Shown in pieces: positions 2,977 through 59,646 of a stretch of DNA of 64,000 nucleotides. The stretch is taken from NCBI GenBank assembly GCA_964247055.1, contig OZ176050.1:10540001-10604000 (forward strand), read 5' to 3'. How positions within the stretch are numbered: position 1 is the first letter of the stretch; each line of letters opens with the position of its first letter. The notes beneath the pieces were generated by a model that had not been told where the DNA came from, did no database searches, and saw only the letters and a list, made by a program, of their open reading frames with translations. This DNA is from Paragordius varius. Its lineage: Eukaryota > Animalia > Nematomorpha. The translations under genes were made by a program, and so were the position numbers.

Positions 2977-5482
2977 ATGTCAAGCCCCAAAGATATTTAT
3001 TATGAGGCAAAAAAACCTCGAACAAAATGGCAAAAATTTATGCGAGCCATATGGAATTCCGATCGTAAAGAGTTTTTAGGCAGAAATGCTGCTAGTTGGG
3101 GTATTATCATTATAATATTTAGCCAAAATTTTAATTGCTTATATAATTTTTTACCTGTTTTTGGCTGGTTTCTTTGCCATAATGATGGTTGTTTTTTTAC
3201 GTACACTAAGTCGGACGCGTCCTCGATACATTTTAAGTGACAGTATTATAGGCACAAATCCTGGTAATATATTTATTAAAAAGATCAAATCATATCTTAT
3301 GCTAAAATATTTCAATATAGGTATGGGTTATAGACCTCATCCTGATCCTGAAAAAACTCTTATTTATTTTCATCCCAATAAACCAAACACTTATTCACCC
3401 TACATCGATGATTTAAACAAATTTTTGAAAAGTATGCGCATATTTTTTGTTGCATTTATTATGTTTATGATTATTTATAATTTACTAATTTATGTAACAC
3501 TTTTAATGATGCTAGTTATATATAAATATTTTTTGGCTCTAAGCAAAATATTTTCATACACATATTTAAACGATAAATATGCTTGAAGCCTTTTTTAAAA
3601 TAAAAATAACATATATTTTTTCATCATTGGTGTTGGTGATATATTTAATAATATTTATTATTTTAGAACTTTTTTATACCATATTTTAACTTTTTTCAAA
3701 ATTTGGCTAAAAATATTTTTTTGAATTATTTTTAAAGCATATATATACAATGGATAAATATTTTGCATTGTTATATGTATATACTTTGTGTGTTGTAGCG
3801 CGATGAAAGATTTATTATTAATTTTAATAGTAAAAAAATAATGAATTTATTGATTTAGATACAGTTTATGTAGTTAGCTATATTTAGTTAGCCTACTACA
3901 TAGTATGTGCGCAATACAAAATAAAGCTATAACTTAAAGAGTAATTTATTAAGCGGTTAAATGCCGGTTAATATTTTTGATTTTGCGGATATTTTGACGA
4001 AATACTTAGCGTTGTTTTTGCATAATGTTTACGGACTAAACCTTCAAAAATTTGAGTAAGCTGTTTTTTGAATATGATTTTCAATGCACGATTAGGTTTT
4101 AGCGAATCTATGTATTTTCTGTCGATTATGGTATATTATGTTATTCCACTCATTACAATAATATATTTTATATATAGTTAAATACATCCATATTATTGAT
4201 TATATGGTCGTTAAGAGCAAAAAAAGTTTAAATGTTTGAAACGAAGGAATCTTTTTTTATTGATTACACTTTTGATCTATTTTTCCATGTCAGCTTAAAA
4301 CTTAAAATTATTTTATCTAACAAAAATATAATCACTAACATATTTATATATATTTGATTGCTAATTTTGTACAATACAACCCATTTTTAGCATATGAAAC
4401 GAGTGATCAAATGGAAGGGGAAGATTTCCTCAATTGTAATTACCAGCAAAAGGTTAGAGATGAACAAATCTGTAAAGTCGATATTAAGGACGTGAGCGAA
4501 GGTTGTGATAAATCCAGGGATTATGGTTACAAGGATGGGAAACCATGCGTCCTACTCAAACTTAACAAAGTTAATTTTTTTACGTTTATACATATTTTTT
4601 TGGGTATTACTTTAAAGTGTGGATCCATATTTATTGGTTATTGGAAAGGTAAATAAATATAAATGATTGATATAGTGTGAAAATTTGTACCTACTTTTAT
4701 TTTATACAATATCTAAAAACTCTCCGCAAGTGACGTAAACATTAAGAATAAGTCACATTATTTCATAAGTATTAAATGACATAAAAATTTTAAAAATTAT
4801 AATATTGCATGCAATTGAAAATTTACATAATATATTAATAAACATTGACTTTAAAAATAAAGCACATGATTGTGAAAATATCTCAAATTTTAGTTGAGTC
4901 ACAAGTTTATCATAAACCTCCCTTACGGTATTATTCTTATTTAATATTACAACTATATATTTACTGATATAATTTATCTTTGACTGTAATGCAAATTTAT
5001 TGGCAGAAGAAATATTTTTTGTTTTTGTTAATGATGGTACACTTAAATATGTTTTCTTTTAACTTTATTTGAACATAATTTTTTTTATTGTTGATCTGAG
5101 ATTATGTCCAAAATTTGAACTTTTTGTAAAGAAAATAGGATGGGAACTACCTCTAATGTTTTTGCAAGTTTTTTGTTAAATACCTAATTTTATATTTGCT
5201 AATGTACAATTTGTTGATTTTTAGTAACTATCATCTATTTTTCTGGTCCAATAATTTAGTTCTCTTTTTTTTCATTGCTTATAAATTATTTATGAAGCAA
5301 ATTTCCATTGTAATTAAATGTGATGCATATAATGAATGAACAGATCAAAATTGCATCTCCGATTTTAAATTTTACCATATAACTATTATACTTTTAGGTT
5401 AATTTATATTATCATATGTATACTTGATATATACCCATTTTTTGTTCATTTAATTAAACATTAAACAGTGTTTACTTTATAG

Positions 5483-5514
<32 letters not shown>

Positions 5515-8142
5515 GCAAATTTGACAACTATTAAATTTTGCCATTTTTTTTGGTTTTTCTGGAATAATTTAATAGTTTATTGAAATTTATTTTTGACAAA
5601 ACTAGTTTCAGTTAATTTATATAAATTGGGACTAATTGCTTTTAGATGCTAATATATTATTTGTTCTTAATTTTTAAGATAATATGGGATTGATCTTAAT
5701 TTTAATAATGCGTGCGTCTAACCTTTAAAACTAGCTTGCTTTGTTACTAGCATCATTCATAATTTCCATTTTTTAGCAAAACAATTTTTTTTGCTATAGA
5801 GTATTTTAGTAGGTGTTTACAAAATTTTACCATTTTAATTATGTAAATATTATATTAATTGAAATATGAAGTTATATTTTTTTCATAATTATTTATTAAT
5901 GGTGTGTCATTTGAGATCAATAAAATTATTATAAAAATAATAGAATAGACATAAGTTTGGTGCTAATTGATTTTAAAAGGAATAATAATGATATGAATGC
6001 CACACTTATATCCTGTTTTAGATTAGATATTTTAATCAGTGCTTATTTTGCACCATTATTTTATCATAAACAAATGATTCATTGAGAAGTTTTTTAATTA
6101 TATAAGTATTTAATAGAATCATATGTTGCTTAAAGAGCTTAATATAAACGGTAATATAGTCATTATGAATATATTCTTTTTCACGATAATTTTATTTAAT
6201 TTCAATATTAATAATTATTTTAGATTTTTTGATTTTAATATTGTGTAACTTGAATAATGTTTTTTATAATTAAGATTTATGGGTGGAAGCCAAAGCCTTA
6301 TGCCCCCAACAAAATACCAACTGATGTTATAGCTTCTTATGATAATAGATATGTCACAATACGATGCGAAGGCGAAGTATAACATTAATTTTTATTTTGC
6401 ATTTTATGAAATTTATTAAAACTACTAATTAAATAACCATCTTTTTTTAAGTTTGATTTATCAAGTTTAGTAAAGAGTTGTCTTAATCAAAATCTAATGT
6501 TTCATTTTCATTTATGATGTAGTCATAAGTCAATACCGGTTTAATTAAGAAAAGGTGTGAGCGAAAAGTACCCAATCAAATAATTTTATAGTTCATCTGA
6601 CATTATACTATAATCACCCACAATTTAGTCCGCCAGAAGATCGTCTTTTTAGCATTCAGTATTGCTTTTATATCAGAAAAATTATGAAGTCATCGTTTTC
6701 TGCTAAAAACATATGCTTAAGATGCTCTATCGATAAAACATGTGAAACATTCGTAAATTTAAAAGTTGTGATTTTAAGAGAGAGAGACCAGGCGCTTTGA
6801 TAAACCATACAATTGCGAAAACGATAAAGTTTACGAGTTAATTATATGTATAAGAATTAATTCATAACGAGCAATGAGAAAGACCAATAACTTGTGAATA
6901 GGTTTCACACAGTTTCAACAATATCCAAAATCGCAAAGTCGCTTAAGAAATCTTTTTTTGAGCCACGTAAGGAATTTTTACTTCGAACTCTGAAAAGTGG
7001 TTTTTTTAAAAAACTTTGCTTCATTCCAAGCCAGCCTAGTAACACCAGGTCAAATCATTTGGAAAAAACTACTCTGTGTCTGGTGGGATTAGAGCTGTAT
7101 TTTGTTTTATGAACCCTTTAGAAGTCTGGTGAAACCGTTAATACACAACGTTATCGCCAACAAATGATTCATTTAATCATGCAATAATCGAAAAATGATA
7201 AGAATGGGCCAGAACACATGGCAAAATGATTGCATAATATTGCTCTCTTTTTCGCAACGAATCCAAGTTACCTTGAAATCGTTTTGATGAGCACTTTCGC
7301 ATCCCCCATACTATCCTGTGGTTCACACTCTCGCAGAGCGGTTGAATAATTTCGAAGACGTTTGGCTTGATGAAGTGTTTGCCGGAAAAGACAATCAGTG
7401 TTTCTGGCAGTCATTCTTAAATTATCTGAAGGATTGCGTAAATCTCGATAATGATTTGGATAAAATAAATATTTATTTTTTCAAATCACACTTTTTACTA
7501 AGAAACTGGTGTAAACATATGGCCACACTCTACATTTATTTATAAATATTGATTACAATGAGAAGTCAAGGATGAGAATCATAAATCAATATATAGAAAA
7601 TATTTGAAATGTTTTATTTTTTTAAATCCATTGTCAATGATTCTACCATCTATCTTTACTTTTAGATTGTTATAACTTTTATCAGAAATTAAATTCATAA
7701 ACGATTTATTGTTGTTGAAAATATTATGCCTTTTTCTTTATTCATGATTACTTTGCACAGTCAATGTATGAGTAATAAGCCAAAACATCTGACTTGCATA
7801 TAAACAGCGTTTTTTATCCTTAAGGCATCATAAAACTTTAGCCTTTTTTACTATATAACATAGTTATTTTACATTTATGCATTGTAGAACGCAGCGGATC
7901 AAGAAAATATTGGTGAAATAACGTATTACCCATCGCCCAAGGGTATTTCCTACCTAGCTTTTCCATTCCTCAATCAAAAGGGCTATCAGGAATCGTTTAT
8001 TATGGCAAAATTTAACAATCCTCAACGTGGAATCCTTATCAATGTTATATGCAAGGCTTATGCCGGTAACATTGTTCACGATAAACCAAATGAAGAATCG
8101 AAACTCCGTGGTGCTGTACGTTTTGAGTTATTGGTTGATTAA
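2977..8142 (+). CDS. ATP1B: Na+/K+-transporting ATPase beta subunit (nervana/ATP1B family), 6 exons, 303 aa
   Basis: Exons 2977-3100, 3123-3263, 3321-3431, 4391-4569, 6275-6376 and 7888-8142 splice GT-AG, in phase, to 912 nt. Family motifs: EFLGRNAASWAKILIAYIIFYLFLAGFF (TM), [33 protein letters not shown], C-terminal RGAVRFELLVD*. Confidence 0.95.
3101..3122 (+). other. 22-nt GT-AG micro-intron (Na/K-ATPase beta intron 1)
   Basis: GTATTATCATTATAATATTTAG. Removing it joins frame 2977 to frame 3161 and restores SW-A-KILIAYIIFYLFLAGFF. Confidence 0.88.
6515..7531 (+). mobile_element. Degenerate mariner (Mos1-like) transposon in Na/K-ATPase beta intron 5
   Basis: Broken transposase: RYRQQMIHLNHAIIEK, SHPPYYP, MVHTLAERLNNFEDVWLDEVFAGKD, resembling the Mos1 C-terminus. 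Degenerate TIRs near 6517 (CATAAGT..TACCGGTTT) and 7500-7531. Confidence 0.75.
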
Positions 8143-8480
8143 AAGTAAAGGGGGAAGAGAAATTTTATTTTTGGTTATATCTAATTTTAAAAAAAATAAT
8201 TTATTTGTGTTTGATTACCATATTATAATCAAGATGTGTCTCACTAAAATGTTTTTTTACCCGTATAAATCTAAGAATATGTGTTATAATGCATATGTTT
8301 TATGATGACTGGTTTTTTATATCTCACCACTCTCTCGTAAACCCTGACATATACAGATGGATAATAAATGTATCCCCCATGTTTTTTCGTTTCTCCAAAT
8401 AATATAAATATTTCGTATGAAATTATTAATTATATCAACCTATTTTAATACTACTTATTATACGCCTCATGGTATTCATA

Positions 8481-8515
<35 letters not shown>

Positions 8516-9606
8516 CATTTAATTTTTACTGAATAAGTGCTTTCCAATTCATAACTAAGAATATTATGTTTCCACTCTTTTTTTTCCACACGAAAAGGCT
8601 TTACATCCCATTATTTTTACATACATATACTATATATCATTATTTTACAACTTATTGATTAATGATGTAGATATATTTATGGCCATCTTAAACCTTACAT
8701 ACATATACATATAGATATCTGGTCATTCATGTATTTTGTAAATAAATGATAAAATTTTTGCGTATCAAAACATATAAAATACATATTTGCCGATCCTTAA
8801 ATTATTATTTAGTACTTTAAAAAAATATCCAGGTTAGTTAGGAAATGCACCCTACAAATATTTGATCATATTTGTTTGGTTTTTAAGTAAGGATACATAA
8901 TTTACCTTTTTTTATTCATTAATAAAGAATGGTGTTAATTCACGAAACAATGATTCGTTAATTGTTTTTTTTTGCAATATTAATTATTCATTGTGATATT
9001 AGTAAAATAAAAAATTAGCGATGAGTATGCTTAGCGGAATGGTAGAGTAAGTAGGGCGCCCGAATGACCGCTTAATTATGATCGAAATTTTATTTTTTCA
9101 TAATCACTCTCAGCCCTAAGCATGCGAATTATAAGGGGATGGGACTTTGTGTATTATAACTAAATTTTTCGTTTTAAAAATACTTGGCTTTTAAAATTTA
9201 TCAGGTTTATTAGACATGTTCAAAGGTAAATTTGATTTGTAAATTTTATTTTAAAGTTATAATTTTTGTAATTTAGGTAAAATTTGAAAAAGATTCTTAG
9301 ATGATGGTGATGGCTTTCGGTATCTAATTATATAAAATAAATGATTTTATTAATTGACTCGTGCATAGTCTTGAAAATCTTCACATATTTCTATCAAAAA
9401 ATGTTTATTGCATTAAAATATATTTGTCACCATAAATGAAAGATACTCCTTTAAATTAATATTTTGTTCAGGTTTTAAAATATTTTGTATTACATTAAAT
9501 ACTCACCTATTTCCTTTTTAGTGATTTCATCCATATCGATCGCTTGGAGCTTTTTCCAAATATTTTTTTTCCTTAAAAGATTAATATTTCATTCCAAAAT
9601 ATCGTT

Positions 9607-9700
9607 TAACATTTGGATCCATCAACACATTCATTTCAGTCCTCCGATTCAAATAGGGAACCCCGAGCCTGTTTCAAATCAAATATTTTTAAAAATATGG
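9607..9700 (-). mobile_element. Right-end fragment of the piggyBac-like MITE family
   Basis: The reverse complement reads CCCTATTTGAATCGGAGGACTGAAATGAATGTGTTG..CCAAATG|TTAA, matching the ends at 23430-23482 and 40213-40263. Confidence 0.55.
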
Positions 9701-12700: not shown

Positions 12701-12719
12701 TTTTGGAGATCTTAGACAT

Positions 12720-13780: not shown

Positions 13781-13794
13781 GTGCTTGTCATATT

Positions 13795-14724
13795 TGAATG
13801 ACCCATTGTGCTAAAACCAAAAAGGTTATTAAAATTTATCGTTTGCGGGTAAAAACATATGAAACATGCACATCGATTAACACATGTGAAACATGGTTTC
13901 GAAATATTAAAAGTTGTAATTTCTGTTGTGAGGATGCTCTGGTAGACTGCACAACTGCGAAGACACTTAAATGCAAGGGTTACCGGCAGAATCATTACAT
14001 GCGTAGCAAAAAACAATCTATAGATGTCTACGAGCAATGGGAAAGACTAACGAACCCGGTAAATTTATCCACAGTTTGAATAAACGTCAAATGGAAAATT
14101 GCAAATTGACTTGTAAAATCCTGTTTCTTTGCACGAAATGAAATCTTTTTTGCATTGAATTGAGACGGGTGATGTGTGATGGTTTTACTTTGTTATTTCA
14201 AAGCGGAAAAAACGTCACTTCAATCTTCCCAAGCCGTTCCATCCTCAACAAAGCCAAATAGCTTTGGCAAAACATTATCCTCAATGTCTTGTGGAACCAG
14301 AGGTTGAATTATAAATTCTTGAAGTTACCTAAAATCGTTAATTCACAACACTTAACAAATACCTATTTCAAACCTTGAATTAATCGAAAAAGAACCGGAA
14401 TGAGCAGAAACATTGCTAAACAATTTTGCTACATGACATCGCGCAAAACTGATAAAAGACACCTTCTCTCTTGTGAGGAATTTTTCCCTCATCCGCTGAC
14501 TCTCCTGACACGGCGCGTCAGCTTTTTAATAATTTCAAAAGCGTTGTAAAATAGCCCGAATGTTTACTGCAAAAGTCAATCAGTTTTTTCTGACACGTTT
14601 TTTGTATACCGAGCAAAATGCGTAGACGCCGCAAGTACCATATTTTGAATAAAATAAATAATTGATTTTCCTCAAAAATAACATGTGTTATTACCAAAAA
14701 ACCGGTTACTTAAAAATACACCTG
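13795..14724 (+). mobile_element. Degenerate mariner transposon, 5'-truncated
   Basis: INTCETWFRNIKSCNF (mariner WFxxF motif), LHDIA (~14430, cf. LHDNA) and PHP..SPD (~14490). Right TIR AAAACCGGTTACTT..ATACACCTG ends at 14724. Confidence 0.75.
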
Positions 14725-36526: not shown

Positions 36527-36648
36527 AATTATATGTAAATGATGTGTAGGAAAAATTTGATTTAATTTAACTCGTCCCATAACATAAATAAAACATGGTA
36601 TCAAGCATAGGATAAATTATTAATTTATAAGGAATGTATGGTGTATAA

Positions 36649-39338: not shown

Positions 39339-42300
39339 ATGGGTTCTGATAAAGCACAAGATGTTCAACCTCCAAGGATGTCACATTCTTTTGTACTTAT
39401 GGGAGTTGGTAATTTATATAAATTGCAAATTCTGTTAAAGAATGATAAATATCTATAATTTATAATAAAATTTAGCTTATATATGCGTATAAAGTAAAAT
39501 TAGTTTTTAATTTTGGACTTTTATTTAAAAATTTTTTTTACCAAAAATACATATAGTTTAATGGATAAGTTACTAGGTAACTCTTTTCAAAACAATGGTT
39601 CAGCAAACCCTCCGTTTGAAAGGTACCATTGTGTAATATTAGCTTAATTGCATAATCATAATATTTAGTAAGGAGTAAATGATTAAAGCTAATAAGTTTT
39701 TACGTAATTAAACCTTATCACTTCGAATGGGGTATCTAAATATCTTAGACCATATTTAAATTGATAATTTTAAAAAACTGAAAGAAACGTTTCAAATTTA
39801 AATTATGCTTCTATTCCAATAAAAATTATATAAATAAGACAAATTATCTAAGTAAAATTTAGTTTTGAAAAAAAATTCCGTATCAAACCACTTCGACGCC
39901 ATTTTTATTTTACAACATTTTTGCAAAATATCGCGTTATTTAATCTAATGCCAAAATTAAATGTACTTTTTAATTGAAATCACATTCAATATTGATATAA
40001 ACACAAAAAGTGGTTTATTTTGCATTATGCACACATGTAATAGCTAGATTTTTACCTTTATGTTTTTTACCTCTTTATAAGTTATATTAAGTATTTGTGA
40101 ATAAGTTTTTATATTTCGGTTCATTGATGTTATACAAGTGCAAACTTTTGCATGATTTAATTTTTTCCTTATTATTTGAAATATTTAATTTTAAACAAGC
40201 CTGGATACAACTCCCCAATTTAAATCGAAGGACTGGAATGAATGTGTTGTGTCCAAGTGTTAACACATTCAAAATAAAAAAAATTATTTTAAGGAGCACT
40301 AGTTTTGATTTTGGGCGTGTTTAGCGTTTCTGCCATAGTTGTTTCACGAGGGACAAATAGTAGATTATTTCCAAAGAATCCAATTTATGCCAAAATGATC
40401 AATCAAAGCATTCCACTTGTCTGCATAATTAGCTTCGGAGGAATATTGTGTTTCATTTTCGGTGGCGTGATGTTTGCATACGAGGTAAAAATATTTTACC
40501 GTAAGAATACTGTTTATAATTTGAAGTGCAATTTTCTAGTACTAAATATACATTAATTTATTATTCAATTTATAAATCACGTATTTAAAATTGATATCCA
40601 TGAAAAATAATTATTAAGAGGCTGTCACAGCAGAGTTGTTATTGGTGTAGTAAGCGGTTAAAACAAATCATCATCTTTCAAAAAATAAATAAAATATTTT
40701 TTATGGCCATCTGTATATGTCGATTATTTCATAGAAAAAACAAAAGGAAAAAGAGGAGCATCAAGAAATTCAAATCGTCAGAACTAAAGGTAATGCAGAA
40801 TCATTGGCTGATAATAAGAAACCAGAAGAGATAAAATTACTAACTAGTAAAGCATACAAAGGGGCAACCATAACAATTCCAAATGTTAGCGGTTCAGGAG
40901 CGCCTTCACCCACCTCACCAATGGAGAAATTAGCGGAAGATCCGTGGTGGATTTCATGGGAACATATGAGTTTAGAAAGTCAAATTCTAGGTAAGGGTAA
41001 CTTTGGACAGGTACAGAAGGGAACTGTATTCGATAAAAAAACGGGCCAAACGCAAGTTGCAGCCATTAAGACTATGAGAACCACAAAAGGTATTTTATGT
41101 CGTATACCAAGTGACATTTTAAATGTCGATATTTTCCAATCGTTAACCTTAGATTTTGAAACTTATTGACTCTAAGTTAATATAATATGAGTTTTATTAA
41201 ATAAGAAAAACATAATGTAGACATTTTGAAAATGAAACCATGCCTCCAAAATTGTTTTTAATACAAGTAGCATATTTAAGAATGCAATAAATAAATAAAA
41301 ATTCTTTTCCTGGTTATCATATCAAAAAATTGTTTAAGAATTTTATCGGATTAGGAAACAAAAACGCTGAAGAAGCATACGAGCTAATGGTTGCCGAAAT
41401 GGAGATTATGAAAAAAATTGGTTACCATCCAAACATTGTTAATTTGCTTGGATATTGTGAACATGATGGTACTTTTTAAATATTTTAGATTGTTGACTTA
41501 ATTCAGCCTTGAGTAGGCCCAAAAACCTAAATTAAATTACGTTCTGGCAGCAGTATTTTATAAAAGAATTTGATTAGAATAAAAGCAATGGAAAATAAAC
41601 CCTGAAATATCAAATTAAACAATTTTTAAGATTCAAATATATCGGCGAATCCATAAATATTCCATTGTTTTAAAGAAGAATTAGAGGCCGAATCAATAAG
41701 TCATTTTGGTATACAGTAAGATTGATAAAGAATTATCACGAAAAAGCAAATGAATGTTCAAATGAAGAAAATGATTAGCACATGGTTAAAAAATAAATGT
41801 AAGTAGATGCAGCAGAAAATCATCAAGGGTCGTATATGGGGTATTTATTACATATTTTTAATCATGTGCTAATCATTTTCTTTTGGATATTTATTCGTTT
41901 ATTCTAGAAAATCATTTATTAATCTCATATATATATATTACTACAAAAAAGGATTTTTTTAACTGTTTTGTGATTAGTACTTTTATACTAAAATTCAATG
42001 CAATTAAGTAATATTTTGGATAAGAGATAAAATTATTTTAACTGACAAGGAAACTAAATTAAAAATCCATATTGTGTTTTAGGGTCATTGTTTGTAGCCA
42101 TTGAATTTGCACCTTACGGCGATCTAAAAACTTTCCTTAAAAAGGCTAAACAAACCAAGCAGGATATGGAAAAGAAAGGAGAGAAGGGAGATCCTTTATC
42201 GGTGACGCAAATGTTAAAATTTGCTCTGGATGTCGCCAAGGGCATGGAACACTTGGCTAAACATGGGGTAAGTATCTATTTATTTATAAAAAAATAATAT

Positions 42301-42569
42301 TTACTTAAAAATATAAAATACATAAGAAAAAATTTACGATTTTGTACTAAACCTTTACATTTTTAAAGTTACGAGTTATAAAATAATTTCTTATGCAAAT
42401 TAATAAAAAATATTCATCCTAATATAGATAATTCATCGAGATTTAGCCGCACGCAATATTTTATTAGCGGAAGGTTCATACGGGCTAACTACCGTGGCAA
42501 AAGTCGCAGATTTCGGATTAGCGAGAGATATGTCAGCCGTTTATGGAATATATGTCAAGGAATCAAAGG

Positions 42570-42605
<36 letters not shown>

Positions 42606-43343
42606 GATTTATTTATAGAATAAAATCTCTTGAGCTAATTTTTGTTATCTCCTTTTTTTGTTTCCCCCTTTTTGGGCAATATTTTGGATTAGATCATTTT
42701 AAATTTAAAGACATACTCGAAAATCTTTCTTTATGGTAACAATTACCTTTTTTGTAAAAATGTTGCATTCTTAACCAAATATTATTTTTTTGAATATTAT
42801 GGTTTTATTGAAAAATTTTGATGCGCCGTGTTTTCCAACAAGTGTATATATTTTCATTAAAAATGAATATATCGAATTTAAATTTTAGACAGGAGAATTA
42901 CCGATAAGATGGACAGCACCAGAGGCTATTTTCGATCATGTGTTCACAGAAAAATCTGATGTATGGGCCTTTGGGATAATGTTATGGGAAATCGTAACTT
43001 TGGGTCAAAATCCTTACCCTGAGATTCAACAAAATGCCGATTTCTACAATAGGCTGAAATTGGGTTATCGTATGGATAAACCACCAAACTGTGACGATGA
43101 TATGTAATTTTTTGGTTTCTTTTGGTATCATTTCAAAACAATCCCCCCAATTTATATAAAGATGAATGAATAATACATATATGTTTATATAATTCTAGTT
43201 TTCAAGTAATGCGTTGGTGCTGGAAAACTGCGCCCTCAGAACGACCAACATTCGCCCTTTTGAAGAAGCATTTGGATAAAATGCTAACTCTCAGACACGC
43301 TCAAAAGTATATATCTGAGGAAGGGAGTTTTAAAAATGTGTAA
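39339..43343 (+). CDS. Receptor-type tyrosine kinase (Tie/FGFR-like kinase domain) with a ~55-aa N-terminal ectodomain; 9 exons, ~464 aa
   Basis: Exons 39339-39408, 39577-39622, 40361-40484, 40735-41089, 41355-41468, 42083-42267, 42428-42568, 42889-43103 and 43199-43343 splice in phase. TM segment [24 protein letters not shown]. Kinase motifs [65 protein letters not shown]. The first two exons are less certain. Confidence 0.9.
39719..40259 (+). mobile_element. piggyBac-like MITE copy in kinase intron 2
   Basis: Colinear with 22899-23478 and ends CCAAGTG|TTAA. Confidence 0.75.
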
Positions 43344-49206: not shown

Positions 49207-52200
49207 TCATAAATGAGATTGTAGAGTAGAACTGCTGGCAATATTATTGTTAACATAATTGATAGGTGTGATAAGGCAAGTATTCAATTCCGCATTATGT
49301 TCAACCAATGAATGATGGCGATAAAATTCGACCAATTCTGGCAAACTAACAAATCGTAAGGGTTCGGCAAACCCATATAAATTGGTTGTGGCATTTTTGT
49401 AAATGAGACAATGTCGAACTTGACCATGTGTAATTCTATGTTTAATAAATAGAATAACTATTGAAACGTAATTGGTAACAACAATGTGACATAATTTTAT
49501 AAAAAATAAAAAATTATAATTATTGGAATTGTTATGTATACGTAGTTACTTACACATCGATTTGAATTGAAATATAAATTGTAGGTTAGAATACGGAATA
49601 TAACTCATGAAAAAAGCATTAAACAAAAAACGGCAATGATTTATAAAAAAATGACCTATACTTTAAAATTTCAAAAACCTATCACTGAGAGAATAAGGAA
49701 ATAACATGGTAAATGCAAAAAGTACATAGCTTTACCATCAATACATTTCACCGATGATATATTAAAAAAGGTGACAATGATTTCCGCTAATACTTTTCCA
49801 AAGTTATTATATCAATCAACCTAAATTTCGAAATAAAAGGCCTATAAAACTGTATCATACGTTGCTAACCTTAAAAATTACCAAAAAATAGAATAATAAT
49901 TTGATCGAAACTTAAAAAAATATAAAAAGGTTTTATTAATTTTACAGACATAGAATTTTATAATAATTAACTATGAAATACTTAATAAAAATTTTATATA
50001 AATGGGCAGATGTTTAGAATTTTAATTAAAAAAATTATTTAAATATTTTATGTAGTTTGACCAATTATGAATGCATCTTAACCTTGACCACTTTCACAAT
50101 AACCAATCAAATATAGGATAATAAAAATTAAGAAAGAAAAAATTATGTAAAATTGTAAACTTTTTTTCGTATGCTTTATTTGATTTTTATTTAATATTTT
50201 AAAGCTTCTTGCCAGTTAAAAAACATTTATACTTTAGAAACGGCTTGAGACTATGAATGACTGCATTCTTAAACAGTGAAATAGGTTAAAGTTTTTTAAA
50301 AAACGGTCAAAAACTATTCATATGGATAAATAAATATATATAATTTACGTTATTGAAAGGGCATGAGAACTATTAGGTTTCCCGCTAGGTCTTATGAGAA
50401 ATGTCCCCATCTCTTTCCTCCTTAACAAATTTTCTGCACGATTCCTATCACAATTTGTAATGAGCCACAGTTTTTCATCGTTTGAGATCCAATCATTAGA
50501 ATCTAAAATATATAATAATTATATATTTGCTTATCGAAAAAAAAGTTTAAAAAAAATGTTGCACAGAATTTATTAAATGGTATAATAAAATTTTACACTT
50601 ACCTATATTAAATTTTTGATCTGATTCAATTTGTTCATACAATTGGTTCGATTTATGTATTAAATCTTTATCAATATCATCATCCAATAAATTAAGTTGA
50701 GCTAATGATCCGATCGTTTGATGTGCTAATTATAAAAAAAGTGCAAAAAAATATAATATATATTTATTTTATAAAAAACAAGTTTTACAAAATAATTATC
50801 CTAACTATATATAAATGTGACTGCTGCTTACCCATAAAAATGCAATGTAATATTATAAATGCATAATAAAAAATTAAATATTAGTTGATGTGTATGGTAT
50901 TATATTGTTTAAAAAATAATGAGTTTATTACAATGCTATCATTTTAATATGAAATCAATTAATAATTCACAAAGAGAAACCACCATAATGCATTTTACAG
51001 TAAAATGATGTACTGTGGAAAAAATTTACATTTTTATATATAATCTTTGCCCATTCAAAGCCAAATGTCGAAAAAATATAATGCCCCGACAATAGCTTCG
51101 CCCTTTTTTTAAATTAGCTCCTGGGGCCTATCCCGTGTAAAATACGAGTTTTTTTTAAACAAAAGTCCACAAAAATCGTGTCTTTGAGACAATTGAAAAT
51201 GCGATTTCAAAAATATTTGGGGTGGGACCATTCAATTTCAAATATGATTTGTTTTACTTATTTTCGATTGCGCCGAACATAGTCGGATCGCTTTTTTAAT
51301 TTAGGCCCTCTTTTTACTCGCTCCCCCCGTAAAATACAATTTTTTTCAGAAAAGTCCACAAAAATAATTTTTTGAATCTATTTTTCGCCCAAGACATGAG
51401 ACCGTAAAAATTCAATGAGATTTCCAGGTATTCCCTGTTAGAAAGACAAAATTTTACTCGTGCGTTTTTTTATATCGGCTGGTGGGTAAACAGATAACCG
51501 CTAAAAACTGCCCCTTCATATCGAAATAGCGTGCCTTTGGGGCTAATTCAGAAAACCTATAAGGTTATTGAGTTCAACAGGTGCTTTAAATAATACCCGT
51601 TAAAAGGCAAAAATTTAATTCGTGCTGTTTTTTTTAATTTGCCGTTAATTAGGCCCTTCACGCCCTAAAAAATGCGCTATCATTGAACTATTATTTAGTT
51701 TTAAAGCCATTCTTCCATAAACTAATGAGAGAATATGGAATCAATCATAATTCCAGATGTTCTCCGTAAAAAGACAAAAATTTTAATCAAGTGCCTTTTT
51801 TGTGTCCTGGGTAGGGGGCTACCTGCCTACAACTGCGACACCATATCGATACAGCGTGACTTGGAGGCAAATTTTAGAAAACTTATCGGGCCATATAATA
51901 AAGGCCTGAAATATTACCCGTAAAAAAGCAATAATTTAAGTAGAGCGGTTTTATTATAGTACCCCTAATTAGGCTCTTGCCCTAAAAAATGCGCCACCAT
52001 AGAATGACTTTTTGGTTTTGAGGCAATTTTTCAAAAATCACAAGATAGCATATGGAATCAATCATGACACCAGGTATTACCCGAATTGAGGCAAAAATTT
52101 ATATCGAGTTTTTTTTGTTTAACACCTTGTTAGGGGGCAATCCACGTAAAACTGCGTCATTATATCGATACAGCATGCCTTTATAGCCATTTTCAGAAAA

Positions 52201-55200
52201 CCTATGATACTAGCCTAAAATCTTTATTACCCCTTAAAAAACAAATATTTTAGTATAGGGGGGTTATTTAAATGAGTCGCTAAGTAAAATTTTACGCCCT
52301 GAAAAATGCGCCGCCATAAAACAATTTTTTGGTTTTGAAGCAATATTCCAAGAAATTATAGGAACATATGGAATCCATGATAATTCCAGATATTCCCCAT
52401 GTGTGAAGACAAAAATTTTTCCCAACGCTCTTTTTAATACCTGCCCCTATGTAAGGAGTTACCCGCTAAAAACTAGTATATAGAAATTGCGTTGTTTTGG
52501 AGCGAATTTACAGAAAATTTATGAAGCCATTAGAGCCCATTAAGGGCTTTAAATATTACCCATAACAAGGTAAAAATTAAAGTCAGGCGTTTTTTATCGT
52601 TAGTTTAGGTAGTTTATGGCCTAAAAATACGTCATTATATAACGATTATTTAGTGTTGAGGTATTTTTTCGAATAATCCATGAGACAAAAAATTGCAATA
52701 TTCTACATTTATGTAGGCTTTAAGGGTTTTTAACACTAAAGAAGTGTAGGGAATACCATTCCTAAGATGCATTAAAAGCTGTTTTGCCACCATCTTCTGG
52801 AGCTCTTCTTCTGTATATAGGATATCCATTGTTATCTGTAATCGTATTTGTTAATAAAAACCTGGGATACCGCTTGAAGCATATTCCATCTTTCATACAT
52901 GGGCACGTAGGGTTTAAATCGTTACAGGGTCCATGTATCATATATTTCATAACAACATCATTTAAATCTGTATCAATCGTAGGATCAGGTATTTTAGCGG
53001 ATATAAAAGAATCTATTTCACTTGACTGGTATTTTGGAATAAAGCCAAATCGATATATGTGCATGTGGTAGTCCCCTCTTTTGCCACTCGACTGAGTACA
53101 TCCAACATTGCACTGTACCAAACACCTCGAATCTAACTATACAATCATCAAAAATCTAAGCTTCTGAGATAGTAGTAGAATTTTTATAGATTTCCAAAGA
53201 GGATTACGTGTAAATGTAATAAATAAATCTGGCGCCCACATTGTGCCACATACGCGAGAGCATCCTGGGCATATAGATGCATATGACGAGGACTACCTAT
53301 GTATGAGGATGGTAGTATTGTAAATCTCCCAATATCGTTAATATTATATTCATTAATTAAAGCATCTCGCAGGTGTATATATATATTCTTCAGAACAAAG
53401 TTTAGCCTGATTTAACCGAAGATATAACATACGCTCTGTTTTCATTTTTGCATACATATCTACAATGTATTGGTGAAATAATTGTCGGCATCTTAAAATA
53501 TGATTATCCTGACCGTCCCTTATCATTAATCGATACGAATAATATTTCATTGCGCTACATTTTTTATTAATTTCTTGTTTGGTGATAGATTAATCATTAT
53601 AACATTAAAAATTATATCCATCTCTGCCATCCTAGAATATTAGTGGATATTGTAATAATAAATTATTGCAATGGATCAAGTTCAACTATATCATCACCAA
53701 CAAAATATATTTGTAAAAAATTGTGATGGCTCCCTTGTGCCGGAAGCAAAGAGCCTGCCTTTGGATTTGACCTTTTACTTATAAAAGTTAGTTCATTAAT
53801 TTATACTATATCAGTTCCAAACGATGTCATTTGAAAGCAAGAATTGTACCCCCTAATATTTTGCAAAAAATGTTTAGAATCAGGAGTAGTATTGGCTAGA
53901 AGATTATTTAATGTCATGGGTAAACTCTGAAATGGTGGTAAATACACCTTACGTGATGCACAACATAGCCCTTTGGATTCATTTTTAAATCTTAGAGCAT
54001 TACAATAGGAACATATTATACTCATGGAGCCAATGTCATCCTCACGTAATGCGTGATAGTCGATATCTGTATCATAATGAAAGGCTAAACGATGGTATTG
54101 AGGTTAGCATCCATTACCATTGGTGTATGTAAATTTTTAACATGGGTCCTATAGATAAAATCGCTTTATCTATAATACAAATAGAACAGCAATACGCATA
54201 CAAGGTCCATCATGCTGATCTGTTGTTTGGCTCTTGATTTGAAATTAATGTTATAACATAATGGAGTAGGAGTGCACGATACAGCGGGAACATTATGATA
54301 CAGATATCGACTATCACGCATTACGTGAGGATGACATTGGCTCCATGAGTATAATATGTTCCTATTGTAATGCTCTAAGATTTAAAAATGAATCCAAAGG
54401 GTTATGTTGTGCATCAGGTAAGGTTCATTTACCACCATTTCAGAGTTTACCCATAACATTAAATAATCTTCTAGCCGATAATACTTCTGAATCTAAACAT
54501 TTTTTGCGAAATATTAGGGCAAATTCCTGCTTTCAAATGACATCATTTGGAGCTGATATAGTACCAACTAATGAGCTAACTTTTAGGGTGAGAGGTCAAA
54601 TCTATCATAAAGCAGGTTCTTTACTTCCACAACAAGGGATTGATCACAAATTTTTACAAATATATTTTGTTGGCGAAGATACGGTTGAATTTGGTATCCG
54701 TTGCAATAATTATATCAATCTTAAGAGGCCAATATTAATGCAGTTACAGGAAATATTACATCGTCATAATCAGTTGGTGAAATTGTTCAAAACAGCTATA
54801 GATATGATGCCGTATGATACGCATAAAATTGTTATTCATGCTGACAAAGTGCCTCATGGCCAACATGAACGCAGATATAATGCTCCTACAATGGATGAGG
54901 TGGCGATTGTTATGGACGGCGATCATTTTTATTCAAGAGATATTGTTCTTCACCTGAGAAGCAATAACCTAAAAAATGTGTCCTAAACTCATAGATGTTA
55001 CGATCCACTACAATATCCACTATTATTCTGGGATGGCACAGATGGATATAATTTTAATGTTAAAATGATTAATCCTATCACTAAACAAGAAACTAATAAA
55101 AAATGTAGCGCTATGAAATATTATTCCTATCGTTTAATGATAAGGGACGGTGAGGATAATCATATTTTAAGATGCAGACAATTATTTCACCAATACATTG

Positions 55201-57457
55201 TAGATATGTATGCAAAAATAGAAACAGAACGTATGTTATATCTTCGCTTAAATCAGGCTAAACTTCGTTCTGAAGAATATATACACTTACGATGCTATAA
55301 TTAATGAATGTAACAACGATATTTGGAGATATACAATATTACCATCTTCATACATAGGTAGTCCTCGCCATATGCATGAATATGCCCAAGATGCGCTCGC
55401 GTATGTGGCACAGTGTGGGCGGCCAGATTTATTTATTACATTTAAATGTAATCTTATTTGGGAATCTATAACTGTTCTCCTACTCCCTGGACAGGCCCCA
55501 AAAGATAGGCACGACATCACAGCTCGAGTGTTTAAGCAAAAGCTTAGATCTTTAATTGAATATATAGTTAAATTAGATGTGTTTGGTGAAGTGCAATGTT
55601 GGATGTACTCAGTGGAATGGCAAAAGAGGGGATTACCAAATGCACATATATTGATTTGGCTTTATTCAAAAATAAAGTCAAGTGAAATAGATTCTATTAT
55701 ATCCGCTGAAATACCTGATCCTATGACTGATAAAAAATTAAATGAGGCTGTTTTGAAATATATGATACATGAACCCTGTAACGAATCAAACCCAAGGTGT
55801 CCATGTATGAAAGATGGAAGATGCTCCAAGCGATATCCCAGTTTATTAACAAATACGATTACAGATAACAATGGACCTTTATACAGAAGAAAAGCTCCAG
55901 AGGATGGTGGCAAAACAGCTTTAATGCATCTTAGGAATGGTGACGTAGAAATAGATAATCGATGGGTGATTCCCTACTCCCCCTTATTGTTAAAAACCTT
56001 TAAGGCTCACATAAACGTAGAATATTGCAATTCTGTAAAATCGATCAAATACATTTGCAAGTATATAAAAAAAGGCAGTGATATGGCTGTTTTTCGCGTC
56101 CAACCTGAAATTGCAAGTGAAAATATTAAAGATGAAATATCCCAGTATTAGTCAGGAAGATATATAAGTAGCAGTGAGGCTGTTTGGCGAATATTTTCCT
56201 TTCCCATACATGAACGTAGCCCTACAGTTGTTCATTTATCAATACATTTAGAAAATGGGCAACGTGTCTATTTTACACCTTCTAATGCCATAGAGGTAGC
56301 TAGAAAGCCACCAGATACTACTATAATTGCTTTCTTTAAGTTATGCCAAAAGGACGCCTTTGCGAAAACATTCCTATTACATATGGAACTCTAAAAAAGA
56401 ATTCGAACGGCGCAAGCGAGAGATTCAGTTGCTAGTCTGGTATATGTAAAGGTGCGGCATTACGAATGTTTTTTACTTCGTCTGTTATTGATAAATGTGA
56501 GAGGACCATCTTCATTTAACAATTTGAAAACCGTAAACGGTGTTTTAAATCATACGTTTCGCGGTGCATGCCAGGTGCTCAAGTTGTTGGAAAATGATCA
56601 ACATTGAGATTTATGTATCCATGATGCCCCAAACATCCTACCCTCATCAAATACGTACTTTGTTTGCTATTATATTAAAGCTTCACCCTCATAACCGGCG
56701 GAGCTATGGGAAAAAAAATCAAATGTCTGAGGACATCTTGCTGCAGTACTGTTCAGGTAATTTAATAATAATAACGATGAAGTAGAAATTTTTAATAACG
56801 CTTTGCTAAAAATAAAATTCCCCACCCCAACTTCTTCGCGCTGCGTAGCAGGCCGATTGCGCTAAATTATATTTATGTAAATAAAACCATTTGTATCCAT
56901 TTCATTGGTGTCATCCTCCATTTGAGTCGCATTCAATGTTTCTTCATCTTCGTTTATCCAATTATCAACAGTGACTTGATTAAAACCACGATTTATTAAT
57001 TGTCTAAAATGCGTAAAATAAAAAGGATTTATGAATTACCCAAATATACCAAACCGTCTATTATTCAATAAAATGTAAACAAGTTATATAACATACCATA
57101 TCATAAAAATATTTCAGCCCTTCATATAATTGAAAAATATATCATTTTACATTGTCCAATTTACTTAAAACAACGATAAATATAACTATTTAAATTTTTT
57201 TAAAATTTACGAGATTATGGTTTTTAAAGATATTTTATTGTTAGGTGACAAAGTGAGGGAGGCGACCCTTTAAAGAAAATTTATTAAATTATGGTAAATA
57301 TTTGTATATTTTAATCAGCATAAGAAAGCGAATACCGATAGCTATTTATTATGTGATTTAACATAGTCTCCTTAAAGACTTTACAGTTATAATATATAAA
57401 CATTATTTTTAGTACTCAAATGAATGCTGTTATATACTAACAGTTATGTTCATAACA

Positions 57458-57526
<69 letters not shown>

Positions 57527-59025
57527 ATACATTTTAAGATTTTCTTTCCTCCTATGTAAGTCCATAAGAACTGGTTTTAATTGATTGAAATGAGTTTCCA
57601 ACTCACCACATTTGGTTTCGTGTTGATTAATTTTTTGTTGAAGGGCCGTTAAATGGTTCAACAATTGTACACGTTTAGTTTGCATGGTTGACATGTTATT
57701 CTCAATGATAGACATATCCCTTCCACTAAGCATAGTAACGTAAGTTTGAGCATTACGGGTCAAGAGCAACATTTGACGATCAAACGCTTCAATCAGGCAA
57801 TTAAGTGCATGAGCCGCTGCAAACATAGCATATGTACTTTAAATTAATCTTTTCAAATTTACCCTTAAACAATTTAATAAGAGTTTCAACATTTTATATA
57901 TAAACCATTTACGCCTCAAATTCATTCTTAAACACTTCTGGATTCCGGATATTTTAAATCCGCAAACATTCCAACACAACAATCTCCACTTCATTTTAAA
58001 ATTCAAAAATTTAATACTTATTTCTGGGCTAAATTGACTTATGAATAAGATTAAATTTGTTTTAAACAAAGTTTTTTATTGGATAATATTTTTAAAAAAT
58101 AGGTAGTTTTGGATTTAAATGCCTGAATAATTATATTTTGTTATATGATTATCTATATTTTTGAAAAAAACAACTTATAAACTATAGTAAAACGATAAAA
58201 AATTAATAAATTTCATCTAAATTATTGATTCGGCCTAAAAACCGATAAATTATTTACAGTTTATTTGTGAAATAAATGGTATCTGGAGCTATCTCCAAAA
58301 AAATTTTACGCTTTGTTTAAAAGAACAAAAGCTTTAACAACAAATCATAATGTTTAAATATTACCTTTTCGATCTTTTTCCAATGTTGATCGGGTTAAAT
58401 TTAATTGTACATAGGTACGATTAGCAATACGGGATTTCATTAGATGTTTTTGAGCAATATTTTGCAATAAAGAACGATATGATATGGGAGATTTTTTAGG
58501 TGAACATCCTATTAAATTATCGCTATCCTCCATAAATTTGTTGCTCTCATGACCATTAGATGATTTGGATGACGATCTAGATCGGTAAGAAGATTTACAA
58601 ACAGGTTCTCCCAATTTTATATCAAGAGATCTATTATATTCAATGAGAGAATGTGATTGATAAAATTCAATTAAATTTTGAAGGCTTGTAAATGCCAAGG
58701 GTTTGGCAAACCCGTATTTTCCATGTTCAAAGTAAATCTTTATCAGTTTGTTGGTCATATCTTTTCTATATTAATGTATAATTAAAGGTCATACCTCAAC
58801 GTAAGGGTAAACTCCTTATATCGTTTTTGATTTAAAGAATATCTCACTAAAAAGGATCCGTCACTAGCTCCATTCAATAACTGGTCACAAAACACTCTGT
58901 CTACATTACCCCAAAACCAATCGATATTTTCTAAGGAATCATCGTCAATATGTTTCGCTATAATTATTAAATTAAACAATAATACATGGAGATCCATATC
59001 CCGAATCATCCGTTACTTTGGTCAT
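49207..59025 (-). CDS. PIK3R: Class IA PI3-kinase regulatory subunit, p55/p60 type (nSH2-iSH2-cSH2, no SH3/RhoGAP); 8 exons, 503 aa
   Basis: Exons 59025-58986, 58957-58795, 58765-58365, 57816-57531, 57003-56888, 50725-50603, 50502-50349 and 49435-49207 splice GT-AG, in phase (1512 nt). nSH2: WFWGNVDR..DGSFLVR..FTLTLR..NKLIKIYFEHGKYGF. iSH2: QLKPVLMDL. cSH2: RAENLLRRKEMGTFLIR..VRHCLI..YGFAEP..SLVEHNAELN. Confidence 0.93.
51420..52690. repeat. Diverged ~320-bp tandem repeat, about 4 units, within the Helitron 5' region
   Basis: ATATGGAATC recurs at ~51733, ~52051 and ~52366. GCCCT.AAAAATGCGC and (T)CCAG.T.TT recur with the same period. Confidence 0.75.
52691..54079 (-). pseudogene. Inverted, internally deleted Helitron Rep fragment
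   Basis: Minus strand: LAFHYDTDIDY, MSIICSYCNALRFKNESKGLCC, YYSYRLMIRDG, WQKRGLPHAHI, IHGPCNDLNPTCPCMKDG. It is the reverse complement of parts of 54291-56033. Confidence 0.9.
54291..56815 (+). pseudogene. Helitron Rep (HUH endonuclease) region, frameshifted, PIF1 helicase domain absent
   Basis: PDLFITF, VEWQKRGLPNAHILIW (HUH motif with His to Asn), SIKYICKYIKKGSD (YxxKY tyrosines), LLINVRGPSSF. Several stops and frameshifts. Coding homology stops just before the 3' terminus. Confidence 0.92.
57461..57523. repeat. (TA)n microsatellite, the longest of many (others ~5484, 8483, 12178, 12468, 24415, 27414, 28729, 34481, 42571)
   Basis: Direct inspection. Confidence 0.95.
58766..58794 (-). other. 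29-nt GT-AG micro-intron (PI3K regulatory subunit intron 2)
   Basis: GTATGACCTTTAATTATACATTAATATAG. Removing it restores the SH2 sequence FTLTLR|KDMTNKLIKI. Confidence 0.9.
58958..58985 (-). other. 28-nt GT-AG micro-intron (PI3K regulatory subunit intron 1)
   Basis: GTATTATTGTTTAATTTAATAATTATAG. Removing it joins MTKVTDDSGYGSP to SKHIDDDSLENIDWFWG in phase. The N-terminus is not conserved, so support is weaker. Confidence 0.7.
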
Positions 59026-59063
59026 ATTGAACACAGCACTTTTTACATGAATGTGTGGAAAAG
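59026..59063. promoter_or_regulatory. 38-bp interval between divergent start codons of the PI3K subunit and endosulfine genes
   Basis: Minus-strand ATG at 59025 and plus-strand ATG at 59064. A shared or overlapping promoter/5' UTR is inferred, not shown. Confidence 0.5.
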
Positions 59064-59646
59064 ATGAATACTATTATTGAAGAATCAAAATCGTCTCCTG
59101 AAAAGTCTGATGTCGCTAATCAATGTATCGATGAAAAGCAAAAATTTCAAGATAAATACCAAATGAAAAAGCCATTGACGTCTAATTTTTTGTGTAAGAG
59201 ATTGCAAAAAGGAGTAAAAAAATTTATAAATTTAGCAAAAATATTTTGACTCTGGTGATTATAATATGGCTCTATCGAAGAGAAAGATGTTTGCAGACAA
59301 AGTGTTAGCTGTTTCTGACGTAACTAAACAAGAAGAAATTATGAATATTCAGAAAAAATATGAAGATAATTTGCAAAACGCTCAGGAGACGGAAACTGAA
59401 GAAAAACAACAAAGCAATATCCTAATTCATGTGCCATCTATAACAACCACTACCGATAACGATGATTTGGATGAAATAACCGGACATATTATACCAACAC
59501 CTGACAATGTTCCTATGCGAAAAGCTTCGATTCCCTTATCCGGTAACACAATTGGATTGCCTGGAACCCTCAAATCTTCTCAACAATCTCACCCATATTT
59601 AACCGTTTTACAAGGTCAAGCACACCGTCATTCAACAGCCTCCTAA
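59064..59646 (+). CDS. ENSA: Endosulfine/ARPP-19 family PP2A-B55 inhibitor; 2 exons, 186 aa
   Basis: Exons 59064-59213 and 59236-59646 give SNFLCKRLQKG|QKYFDSGDYNMA (Greatwall phosphorylation site FDSGDY) and ITGHIIPTPDNVPMRKAS. Confidence 0.93.
59214..59235 (+). other. 22-nt GT-AG micro-intron (endosulfine)
   Basis: GTAAAAAAATTTATAAATTTAG. Exact removal rebuilds the invariant KRLQKGQKYFDSGDY motif. Confidence 0.95.

Follow-up and report, generated by a model that had tools for sequence, protein, structure and literature searches.

The very short introns of the analyzed window, a 64,000-nucleotide stretch of genomic DNA, are very probably ordinary U2-type GT-AG introns, shrunk to 22–36 nt in a horsehair worm and removed by a standard spliceosome, as judged from sequence comparisons. 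Their presence in the same transcripts as kilobase, repeat-bearing introns, claimed in the original prediction, is borne out in two genes of the window. For the introns of 22, 29 and 57 nt, predicted removal is shown, by Pfam and PDB comparisons, to restore both frame and homology.

The first gene to be considered codes for a subunit of the Na/K-ATPase; its features are the following.

2977..8142, + strand: Na/K-ATPase beta-subunit gene, six exons (2977-3100, 3123-3263, 3321-3431, 4391-4569, 6275-6376, 7888-8142), identified by Pfam PF00287 in exons 1-4, exon phases and translations, and PDB beta-subunit matches
3101..3122, + strand: 22-nt GT-AG micro-intron, phase 1, 14% GC
3264..3320, + strand: 57-nt GT-AG intron, phase 1; a multiple of three in length and stop-free, yet missing from homologues
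3432..4390, + strand: 959-nt intron
4570..6274, + strand: 1705-nt intron, donor GTTAAT
6377..7887, + strand: 1511-nt intron (intron 5), with a dispersed repeat at about 6490-7530

All five introns (22, 57, 959, 1705 and 1511 nt) are bounded by GT-AG, and the exon coordinates agree exactly with the sizes originally given (22, 57, ~960, ~1700 and ~1500 nt). The attribution to the Na/K-ATPase also holds, but PF00287 and the PDB matches indicate the beta subunit and not the catalytic chain. Exons 1-4 cover positions 2-31, 33-70, 76-112 and 128-180 of the PF00287 profile: positions 31 and 33 abut on the two sides of the 22-nt intron. PDB chain 8k1l_B runs unbroken over the 57-nt intron, with ...TNPG(L) at 112 and G(L)GFRP at 111. 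The dispersed repeat of intron 5 (core 7059-7231) has at least 40 genomic copies, at 68–82% identity, while only one piece of the 1705-nt intron, of 30–70 nt, is repeated elsewhere in the genome.

The second gene containing very short introns is related to PI3K, and is listed below together with a tyrosine-kinase gene.

49210..59025, - strand: p85-type PI3K regulatory-subunit gene (nSH2-iSH2-cSH2), seven exons; Pfam SH2 and PI3K_P85_iSH2, PDB p85alpha
58958..58985, - strand: 28-nt candidate micro-intron, phase 1, GTATTATT...ATTATAG, resembling the tiny class
58766..58794, - strand: 29-nt GT-AG micro-intron, phase 2, supported by p85alpha contiguity
57817..58364, - strand: 548-nt intron
50726..57531, - strand: intron 4, about 6.8 kb, with its donor adjoining a (TA)n run
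50503..50602, - strand: 100-nt intron
49436..50348, - strand: 913-nt intron, cutting the cSH2 domain in two
52765..56151, both strands: two head-to-head Helitron-like copies within the 6.8-kb intron, recognized by a PF14214 match and near-identical peptides
40293..43340, + strand: 3' part of a tyrosine-kinase gene, Pfam PK_Tyr_Ser-Thr, with introns of 265, 614, 160, 320 and 95 nt

Here too the original label was right as to PI3K, while SH2/iSH2 domains and p85alpha matches identify a regulatory subunit of the p85 type, not the catalytic chain. The introns measure 28 (candidate), 29, 548, about 6806, 100 and 913 nt. Of the sizes first reported (28, 29, ~100 and ~6160 nt), those of 29 and 100 nt are confirmed, the large one had been under-measured, and the introns of 548 and 913 nt had been missed. 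The 29-nt intron can be considered proven genuine from its contiguity with human p85alpha, where residues 369-372 close exon 2 and residue 373 opens exon 3. The 28-nt segment is only plausible as an intron: the unspliced frame (ORF 58782-59009) is open too, and the N-terminus is not conserved. At the junction between exons 4 and 5, GT-AG splicing produces a 1-nt frame mismatch, next to a homopolymer and a microsatellite, indicating that local assembly errors do exist; a hidden mini-exon was considered as a repair of this mismatch, and 87 candidates were found, none of them convincing.

The Helitron_like_N profile (PF14214) matches 55372-56151 with 102 bits, and intron 4 of the p85 gene also contains 0.5-kb repeat copies. 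The description of the long introns as transposon-filled is thus demonstrated in two cases only, p85 intron 4 and Na/K-ATPase beta intron 5. No micro-intron is present among the five introns of the tyrosine-kinase gene part (40293-43340). Protein searches returned no match for p85 exon 3, and only three distant, STELLO-type matches for a 554-aa ORF; neither search yielded a sequence of the same species from the collection consulted, nor did orthologous loci emerge for the genes of the window.

A larger number of introns was obtained from the PRP8 gene, mapped by a purpose-written spliced aligner, comparing genomic DNA to database proteins, where GT-AG was the sole pair permitted; reference P0027 (3637 aa) was left out, as it produced spurious introns. 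39 introns were found; for 34 of them, two full-length references give the same result, and among these 34 anchored introns 19 are tiny (23–35 nt). The alignment score is 8395 for GT-AG and 6620–7863 for five control dinucleotide pairs: the intron boundaries are therefore more than a chance result. GT and AG are the rarest among the dinucleotide pairs tested in this control, and yet the best-scoring. The top-ranking PRP8 fragment sits on a marine metagenome scaffold.

For 8 of the 12 comparable PRP8 micro-introns, residue and phase are in common with introns of 236–1027 nt in contig L061, from another eukaryote; for longer PRP8 introns the same is true of 7 out of 12. This contig has a GC content of 37%; the PRP8 fragment it carries forms, in ENA, a cluster with a single member. 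Micro-introns are grouped along the PRP8 gene, where they form 10 runs (permutation p=0.004).

Anchored introns, 49 in all, are a non-random sample, 34 of them coming from PRP8. They fall into two groups, with 22 introns of 22–35 nt, none of 36–56 nt and 27 of 57–1705 nt; 15 measure 22–29 nt, and the median of this non-random sample is 76 nt. The share of micro-introns varies from 45% in this PRP8-heavy sample to about 3% (1/30) in CCT genes, whose 30 introns comprise 29 of 71–1263 nt and one of 36 nt. Among the introns sampled, micro-introns thus make up a sizeable minority and cluster within genes. A homology-free census, based on GT..AG segments joining two ORFs, was attempted in three versions, the last with GC-contrast filters: the background, measured with control pairs, reached the level of the signal, and 7 of the 19 PRP8 micro-introns were recovered; the census was therefore given up.

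All 22 anchored micro-introns and all 27 longer ones have GT-AG ends, the only ones admitted by the aligner. Micro-introns have a GC content of 17%. At their 5' site, position +3 is A in 55% and T in 45% of cases, +4 is T in 77%, and AAGT is absent. T at +4 is less frequent in longer introns (30%; p=0.0014, 22 versus 27 introns), which retain GTAA, while the micro class may be described as GT[A/T]T. At the 3' end, 86% of micro-introns have T at -3 and -5, a proportion exceeding 80% in either size class. None of the 22 anchored micro-introns starts with the U12-type GTATCC or ATATCC; the U12-type criteria applied were [AG]TATCCTT for the 5' site and TCCTTAAC for the branch site. Depletion of lengths divisible by three is not significant among micro-introns (4/23, p=0.12). 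Micro-introns do fall, as anticipated, under the minimum intron length assumed by gene predictors, taking for this minimum the value used in the original prediction.

An unusual spliceosome had been proposed to account for these introns, but the parts tested (U1, U2, U6, PRP8, SF1, U2AF65, SF3B1) are neither missing nor altered. Canonical sequences are seen in snRNA alignments at the 5' end of U1 (ACUUACCUG), in the GUGUAGUA box of U2 and in the ACAGAGA box of U6; at least 35 U2 genes are present in the genome, which also encodes PRP8, U2AF65, SF3B1 and SF1, the latter with an RSRW ULM-like motif. Conservation is good for U2AF65, SF1 and SF3B1, none of which has been lost. The suggestion of a reduced dependence on U2AF and on the polypyrimidine tract finds no support, given the presence of U2AF65 and the frequency of T at -3 and -5 reported above.

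Most micro-introns would thus occupy ancestral intron positions, having been reduced in length to 22–36 nt, and would most likely be removed by the standard major spliceosome, working across the intron. The T-rich stretch ending in AG would be read by U2AF, similarly to the nematode UUUUCAG, the branch point may be an A located about 7–12 nt upstream of the 3' end, and the weaker GTWT 5' site may depend on few base pairs with U1. Long introns would be ordinary introns, enlarged by insertions of Helitrons, dispersed repeats and tandem repeats.

Two less likely readings concern the recognition of short and long introns. A single spliceosome may work in two modes, a U2AF-anchored, largely U1-independent shortcut for GTWT introns of 22–36 nt and the classical pathway for GTAA introns: this is considered unlikely. 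If it were true, the empty interval between 36 and 56 nt would mark the border between the modes. The existence of two mechanistic classes is judged improbable as well: micro-introns would follow a modified early pathway, for instance one with hardly any U1 pairing, with an SPF45-type factor taking the place of U2AF or assisting it, or with lineage-specific changes in spliceosomal proteins, and long introns the standard one. The divergence between GT[A/T]T and GTAA is in favor of such classes, although it is based on just 22 versus 27 introns. So is the limited room within a 22-nt intron, where about 12–15 nt are available from the 5' site to whichever A acts as branch point; the spacing of U1 and U2 snRNPs, placed side by side, is thought to be far above this value. 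In human cells, short introns whose pyrimidine tracts are truncated are reported to use SPF45 and not U2AF (PMC8363638). Against two classes, the recognition sequences of U1, U2 and U6 are unchanged, U2AF65, SF1 and SF3B1 are kept, the T-rich 3' end persists in micro-introns, and myxobolids, which have comparable introns, were likewise concluded to have a conventional spliceosome (PMC13644364).

That the micro-introns are assembly insertions, or segments translated, bypassed or recoded instead of spliced, is scarcely credible: the p85 junction 1 nt off, beside a homopolymer and a microsatellite, is in its favor, but 22 out of 22 anchored micro segments are bounded by GT...AG exactly where frame and homology are restored, their GC content is 17%, the majority are not a multiple of three in length, and 8 out of 12 coincide with intron positions of another eukaryote.

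The host lineage may be deduced from mitochondrial DNA. In COX1, AGA is read as Ser and ATA as Met at conserved sites, and TGA as Trp, with six in-frame TGA codons. The cnidarian mitochondrial code assigns AGA to Arg and ATA to Ile, and Cnidaria are therefore excluded. COX1 is carried by a 15.7-kb mtDNA, featuring dozens of perfect hairpins with arms of up to 208 nt; none of the 54 + 15 inverted-repeat pairs is listed inside COX1 (7480-8820). In dicyemids, COX1 is carried on a minicircle. Long perfect mtDNA hairpins have been called exclusive to Nematomorpha (PMC10380579), and the feature is also described in PMC6649704. These mitochondrial features, by themselves, point to Nematomorpha as the probable host. 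As a point against this assignment, the genome measures 110.6 Mb, less than the 200–300 Mb reported for four hairworm assemblies.

It is accordingly very hard to maintain that the host belongs to a lineage already documented for such introns, either a myxobolid myxozoan or a dicyemid. At about 29% GC, the genome does match Henneguya salminicola (29.13%; PMC13644364), and introns of 22–30 nt fit myxobolids and dicyemids alike. Against this identification stand the mitochondrial readings of AGA and ATA, COX1 on a hairpin-rich 15.7-kb mtDNA rather than a minicircle, at least 35 U2 genes versus 1–7 in myxozoans (PMC13644364), and the status of micro-introns as a minority, below-median class. A myxozoan identity, weighed for the matching GC content and intron sizes, was ruled out by the mitochondrial code.

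Median introns of 22–27 bp are reported for the myxobolids Henneguya salminicola, Thelohanellus kitauei and Myxobolus rasmusseni (PMC13644364). Features in common with these animals are GT-AG introns of about 20–30 nt, conserved positions, a reduced 5' motif (GTa), an AT-rich genome, a weakly conserved A before AG, the tendency of short introns to neighbor short ones, and the retention of the U2 branch-site box and of U2AF (PMC13644364). It no longer holds that ultrashort introns are confined to compacted genomes: myxobolids belong to a class with genomes of about 20–200 Mb, and also have introns above 100 bp (PMC13644364). Unlike myxobolids, the hairworm has a TE-rich genome, introns of up to 6.8 kb, a bilaterian mitochondrial code and many U2 genes, and the median of its non-random sample, 76 nt, is not below 30 nt. 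The dicyemid genome is compact, whereas tiny introns coexist in the hairworm with long, repeat-filled ones. Dicyema japonicum, as far as reported in PMC13644364, is likewise a parasitic animal with introns below 30 nt and a reduced 5' signal, but belongs to a different phylum and its 3' signal consists only of AG, while the hairworm keeps T at -3 and -5.

Nematoda are the sister phylum, and their short introns peak near 47 nt. In C. elegans short introns, the UUUUCAG 3' site is bound by U2AF and a branch-point consensus is absent. The hairworm shares with nematodes the T-run immediately preceding AG, as well as introns that are rich in A/T and have no evident branch motif, but its short introns peak at 22–36 nt and the base at -3 is T instead of C.

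In eukaryotes, intron lengths usually show a sharp minimal mode followed by a long tail, and neodermatan flatworms, including tapeworms, feature bimodal intron lengths, with modes of about 32 and 58 bp in Gyrodactylus (PMC4040987). The bimodality seen here would therefore be the usual mode and tail, with the mode moved below 30 nt. Hairworm and neodermatans share a sharp short mode along with much longer introns, placed non-randomly along genes; in the hairworm, however, the short mode is at 22–36 nt, with many introns below 30, and the second class is broad, from 57 nt to kilobases, with no sharp mode. Ciliate micro-introns are similar in length (about 25 nt in Paramecium, 15–16 nt in Stentor; PMC5014332, PMC13644364), and a standard spliceosome is inferred for them also; ciliates are protists where essentially all introns are tiny, while the hairworm is an animal mixing tiny and long ones.

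What had been put forward as a new system is therefore a known phenomenon, in an apparently new animal lineage. Animal introns below 30 bp have so far been described only in myxobolid cnidarians and dicyemids, and further lineages have been predicted (September 2026, PMC13644364); no report of introns below 30 nt in hairworms was found in the literature searched. On the mitochondrial assignment, hairworms would join these two as a third group of animals having introns of this size and, among the groups named in PMC13644364, would be the first ecdysozoan case. Extreme intron shrinkage is not tied to genome compaction, since the genome is repeat-rich and tiny and kilobase introns share the same genes. 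Since both classes are present in single transcripts, as in PRP8 and in two genes of the window, the question of what sets the lower size limit of splicing can be approached by comparison within one animal. Published hairworm assemblies have a low BUSCO completeness, 71.6% for Gordionus, and one paper claims in its title that universal genes have undergone "rampant loss". Part of the apparent gene loss in hairworms may be a modelling artefact, if gene finders fail on introns of 22–36 nt.

In the window, animal DNA with a GC content of 29%, the exons of the genes were scanned singly, one by one. The resulting models are as follows.

2977-3100, 3123-3263, 3321-3431, 4391-4569, 6275-6376, 7888-8142, plus strand: exons of the Na/K-ATPase beta-subunit gene
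59025-58986, 58957-58795, 58765-58365, 57816-57532, 50725-50603, 50502-50349, 49435-49210, minus strand: exons of the p85-type gene
40293-43340: tyrosine-kinase gene, with introns of 265, 614, 160, 320 and 95 nt

The gene originally named Na/K-ATPase encodes the beta subunit. Its introns, all GT-AG, measure 22, 57, 959, 1705 and 1511 nt, in agreement with the claimed 22, 57, ~960, ~1700 and ~1500 nt. Exons 1-4 cover profile positions 2-31, 33-70, 76-112 and 128-180 of Pfam PF00287: as positions 31 and 33 flank it, the 22-nt segment separates neighbouring profile columns. Free of stops and a multiple of three, the 57-nt segment could be coding in principle; this reading was rejected, its 19 residues being missing from homologues in the alignment to PDB chain 8k1l_B, where "TNPG" on one side falls at residue 112 and "GLGFRP" on the other at residue 111.

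What had been named PI3K is the gene for a regulatory subunit of the p85 type; it lies on the minus strand and has introns of 28 (candidate), 29, 548, ~6806, 100 and 913 nt: the predicted 29- and 100-nt introns stand, while the large one had been put at ~6160 nt. At the level of the encoded protein, the 29-nt intron is proven genuine: human p85alpha residues 369-372 close exon 2, and residue 373 opens exon 3. The 28-nt segment resembles the class, but without splicing the frame stays open as well, and the protein shows no conservation at its N-terminus; it is kept as an unproven candidate. A (TA)n microsatellite (57470-57531, minus strand) directly follows the exon 4 donor, and GT-AG splicing joins exons 4 and 5 one nucleotide out of frame, the cause being a homopolymer error or else a splice site of non-canonical type.

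A larger sample was obtained from PRP8 (contig C5 of the genome assembly, 4190600-4202800), to which full-length PRP8 proteins of a representative library were aligned by a purpose-written protein-to-genome dynamic programme, allowing only GT-AG introns of at least 15 nt. Of the 39 introns found, 34 came out the same with either of two references; 19 of the 34 measure 23-35 nt. A further two, about 29-32 nt long, are probably micro-introns too. The GT-AG alignment scored 8395, against 6620-6669 for the control pairs TG-GA and GA-TG, and 7732-7863 for TA-AT, AT-TA and TT-AA, whose dinucleotides are much commoner than GT/AG.

The 34 PRP8 introns and 15 resolved window introns make a sample of 49, 34 of them from one gene, from which the size distribution was drawn up. 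Micro-introns (22 of 49) measure 22, 23, 23, 24, 26, 26, 26, 27, 28, 28, 28, 28, 29, 29, 29, 31, 31, 31, 32, 32, 33 and 35 nt; the other 27 range from 57 to 1705 nt, and none falls between 35 and 57 nt. The micro-introns are confirmed as a genuine, discrete class, as far as splicing can be inferred from DNA.

Exon positions -2 A and -1 G are found in both classes, as is T at -3 and -5 of the 3' site (above 80%). The 5' site, in contrast, is class-specific, GT[A/T]T in micro-introns and GTAA in longer ones: A at +3 occurs in 55% versus 85% (p=0.027), T at +4 in 77% versus 30% (p=0.0014). A makes up 40-50% of positions -8 to -11 in micro-introns, compatible with a putative branch point, although DNA so AT-rich offers no proof.

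Along PRP8, micro-introns (m) and longer ones (L) follow the order mmmmmmLLLmLLLLmmmLLLLLmmmLLmmmmmmL: this clustering into 10 runs (p=0.004 by permutation) suggests that some process acts regionally, over 1-2 kb. In nine CCT-family loci, the introns anchored by profile matches number 29, with estimated lengths of 71-1263 nt, beside one micro-intron only (36 nt, C2:9804720-9804755): genes are heterogeneous, the class being present in some and not everywhere.

The possibility that micro-introns are assembly artefacts is contradicted by intron positions. PRP8 on a 1-Mb ENA contig from another eukaryote (L061, 37% GC), aligned to the same reference, has introns sharing residue and phase with 8 of 12 comparable micro-introns, its own sizes there being 236-1027 nt. 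The micro-introns therefore lie largely at shared, presumably ancestral positions, rather than being artefacts or insertions. Longer PRP8 introns are matched in 7 of 12 cases, with no difference between classes in the share of common positions.

The long introns had been described as filled with transposons. This holds for the 6.8-kb p85 intron and for Na/K-ATPase beta intron 5, about 1 kb of which belongs to a dispersed repeat present in the genome in at least 40 copies (68-82% identity); for the remaining long introns no transposon origin was shown. Inside the p85 intron lie two Helitron-like copies, head to head, whose encoded peptides are nearly identical and one of which carries a Helitron_like_N domain (PF14214, 102 bits); a tandem repeat with a unit of ~0.5 kb also has copies there. 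These and other elements are listed here.

52765-54103, minus strand, and 54345-56151, plus strand: Helitron-like copies
1-1413 and 36646-38383, with related copies at 51360-52116 (p85 intron): tandem arrays, unit ~0.5 kb, copies 68-97% alike
15288-16893, minus strand: RVT_1 reverse-transcriptase ORFs of a LINE/RTE-like element, apparently intergenic (no gene modelled in 8142-20740)
34862-36526, plus strand: single-exon 554-aa ORF with no Pfam match of its own, its only database relatives being three distant STELLO-type glycosyltransferases (PF03385)

An altered or reduced spliceosome, as originally proposed, finds no support in the components covered here. PRP8, U2AF65 (C8:1375939-1380291; RRM1, RRM2 and UHM exons), SF1 (C5, ~3.07 Mb; SF1-HH, KH and an RSRW ULM-like motif) and SF3B1 (C2, 12.106 Mb) are present; the U2AF65 exons appear close to the human protein. 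U1 gave 17 matches (best 124 bits), U2 46 (best 178 bits) and U6 two copies (114 bits), with unaltered functional sequences: the U1 5' end ACUUACCUG, the U2 branch-site box GUGUAGUA and the U6 ACAGAGA box. The snRNA genes form arrays (C3:257-528 kb, C2:11.95-11.99 Mb, C5:12.73-12.79 Mb; C6:565-633 kb) with many degenerate members; these comprise a U1 cluster and U2 copies of which at least 35 exceed the threshold, beside only two U6 genes.

A myxozoan identity, which would have made this a lineage already documented, is contradicted by the mitochondrion (contig C44, 15,693 bp). Its COX1 has AGA at an invariant Ser (HLSGVSS), ATA at an invariant Met (PDMAFPRMNN) and six in-frame TGA, as read from the sequence the invertebrate mitochondrial code. 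This code rules out Cnidaria, and hence Myxozoa. Outside COX1, which has none, perfect hairpins occur by the dozen in the mtDNA, their arms 50-208 nt long. Such hairpins are called "exclusive" to Nematomorpha (PMC10380579), and PMC6649704 describes them as well; the mitochondrial features would thus point to a horsehair worm. The assembly (110.6 Mb, 44 contigs) is smaller than the 200-300 Mb reported for four hairworm genomes. Palindromic 72-nt units form an array immediately upstream of COX1 (C44, L016 6749-7451), and a nuclear copy of a COX1 fragment (profile positions 284-393, six stop codons) lies ~8 kb past the window end (C1:10612280-10612597).

Animal introns below 30 bp have been described as confined to Myxobolidae and Dicyema, with reduced splice motifs and conserved U2 box and U2AF1/2, and further such lineages were predicted (PMC13644364, Mol Biol Evol, September 2026). 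Parasitic flatworms likewise combine a micro mode with longer introns in a bimodal distribution (PMC4040987). Literature searches on introns in Nematomorpha or hairworms listed no report of intron sizes for this phylum, and two hairworm genome preprints do not mention introns. The original observation of micro-introns thus survives with small corrections, but not its reading as a new splicing system, the spliceosome parts covered being standard and the phenomenon known: Paragordius varius appears to be a new lineage for the recently described ultra-short introns.
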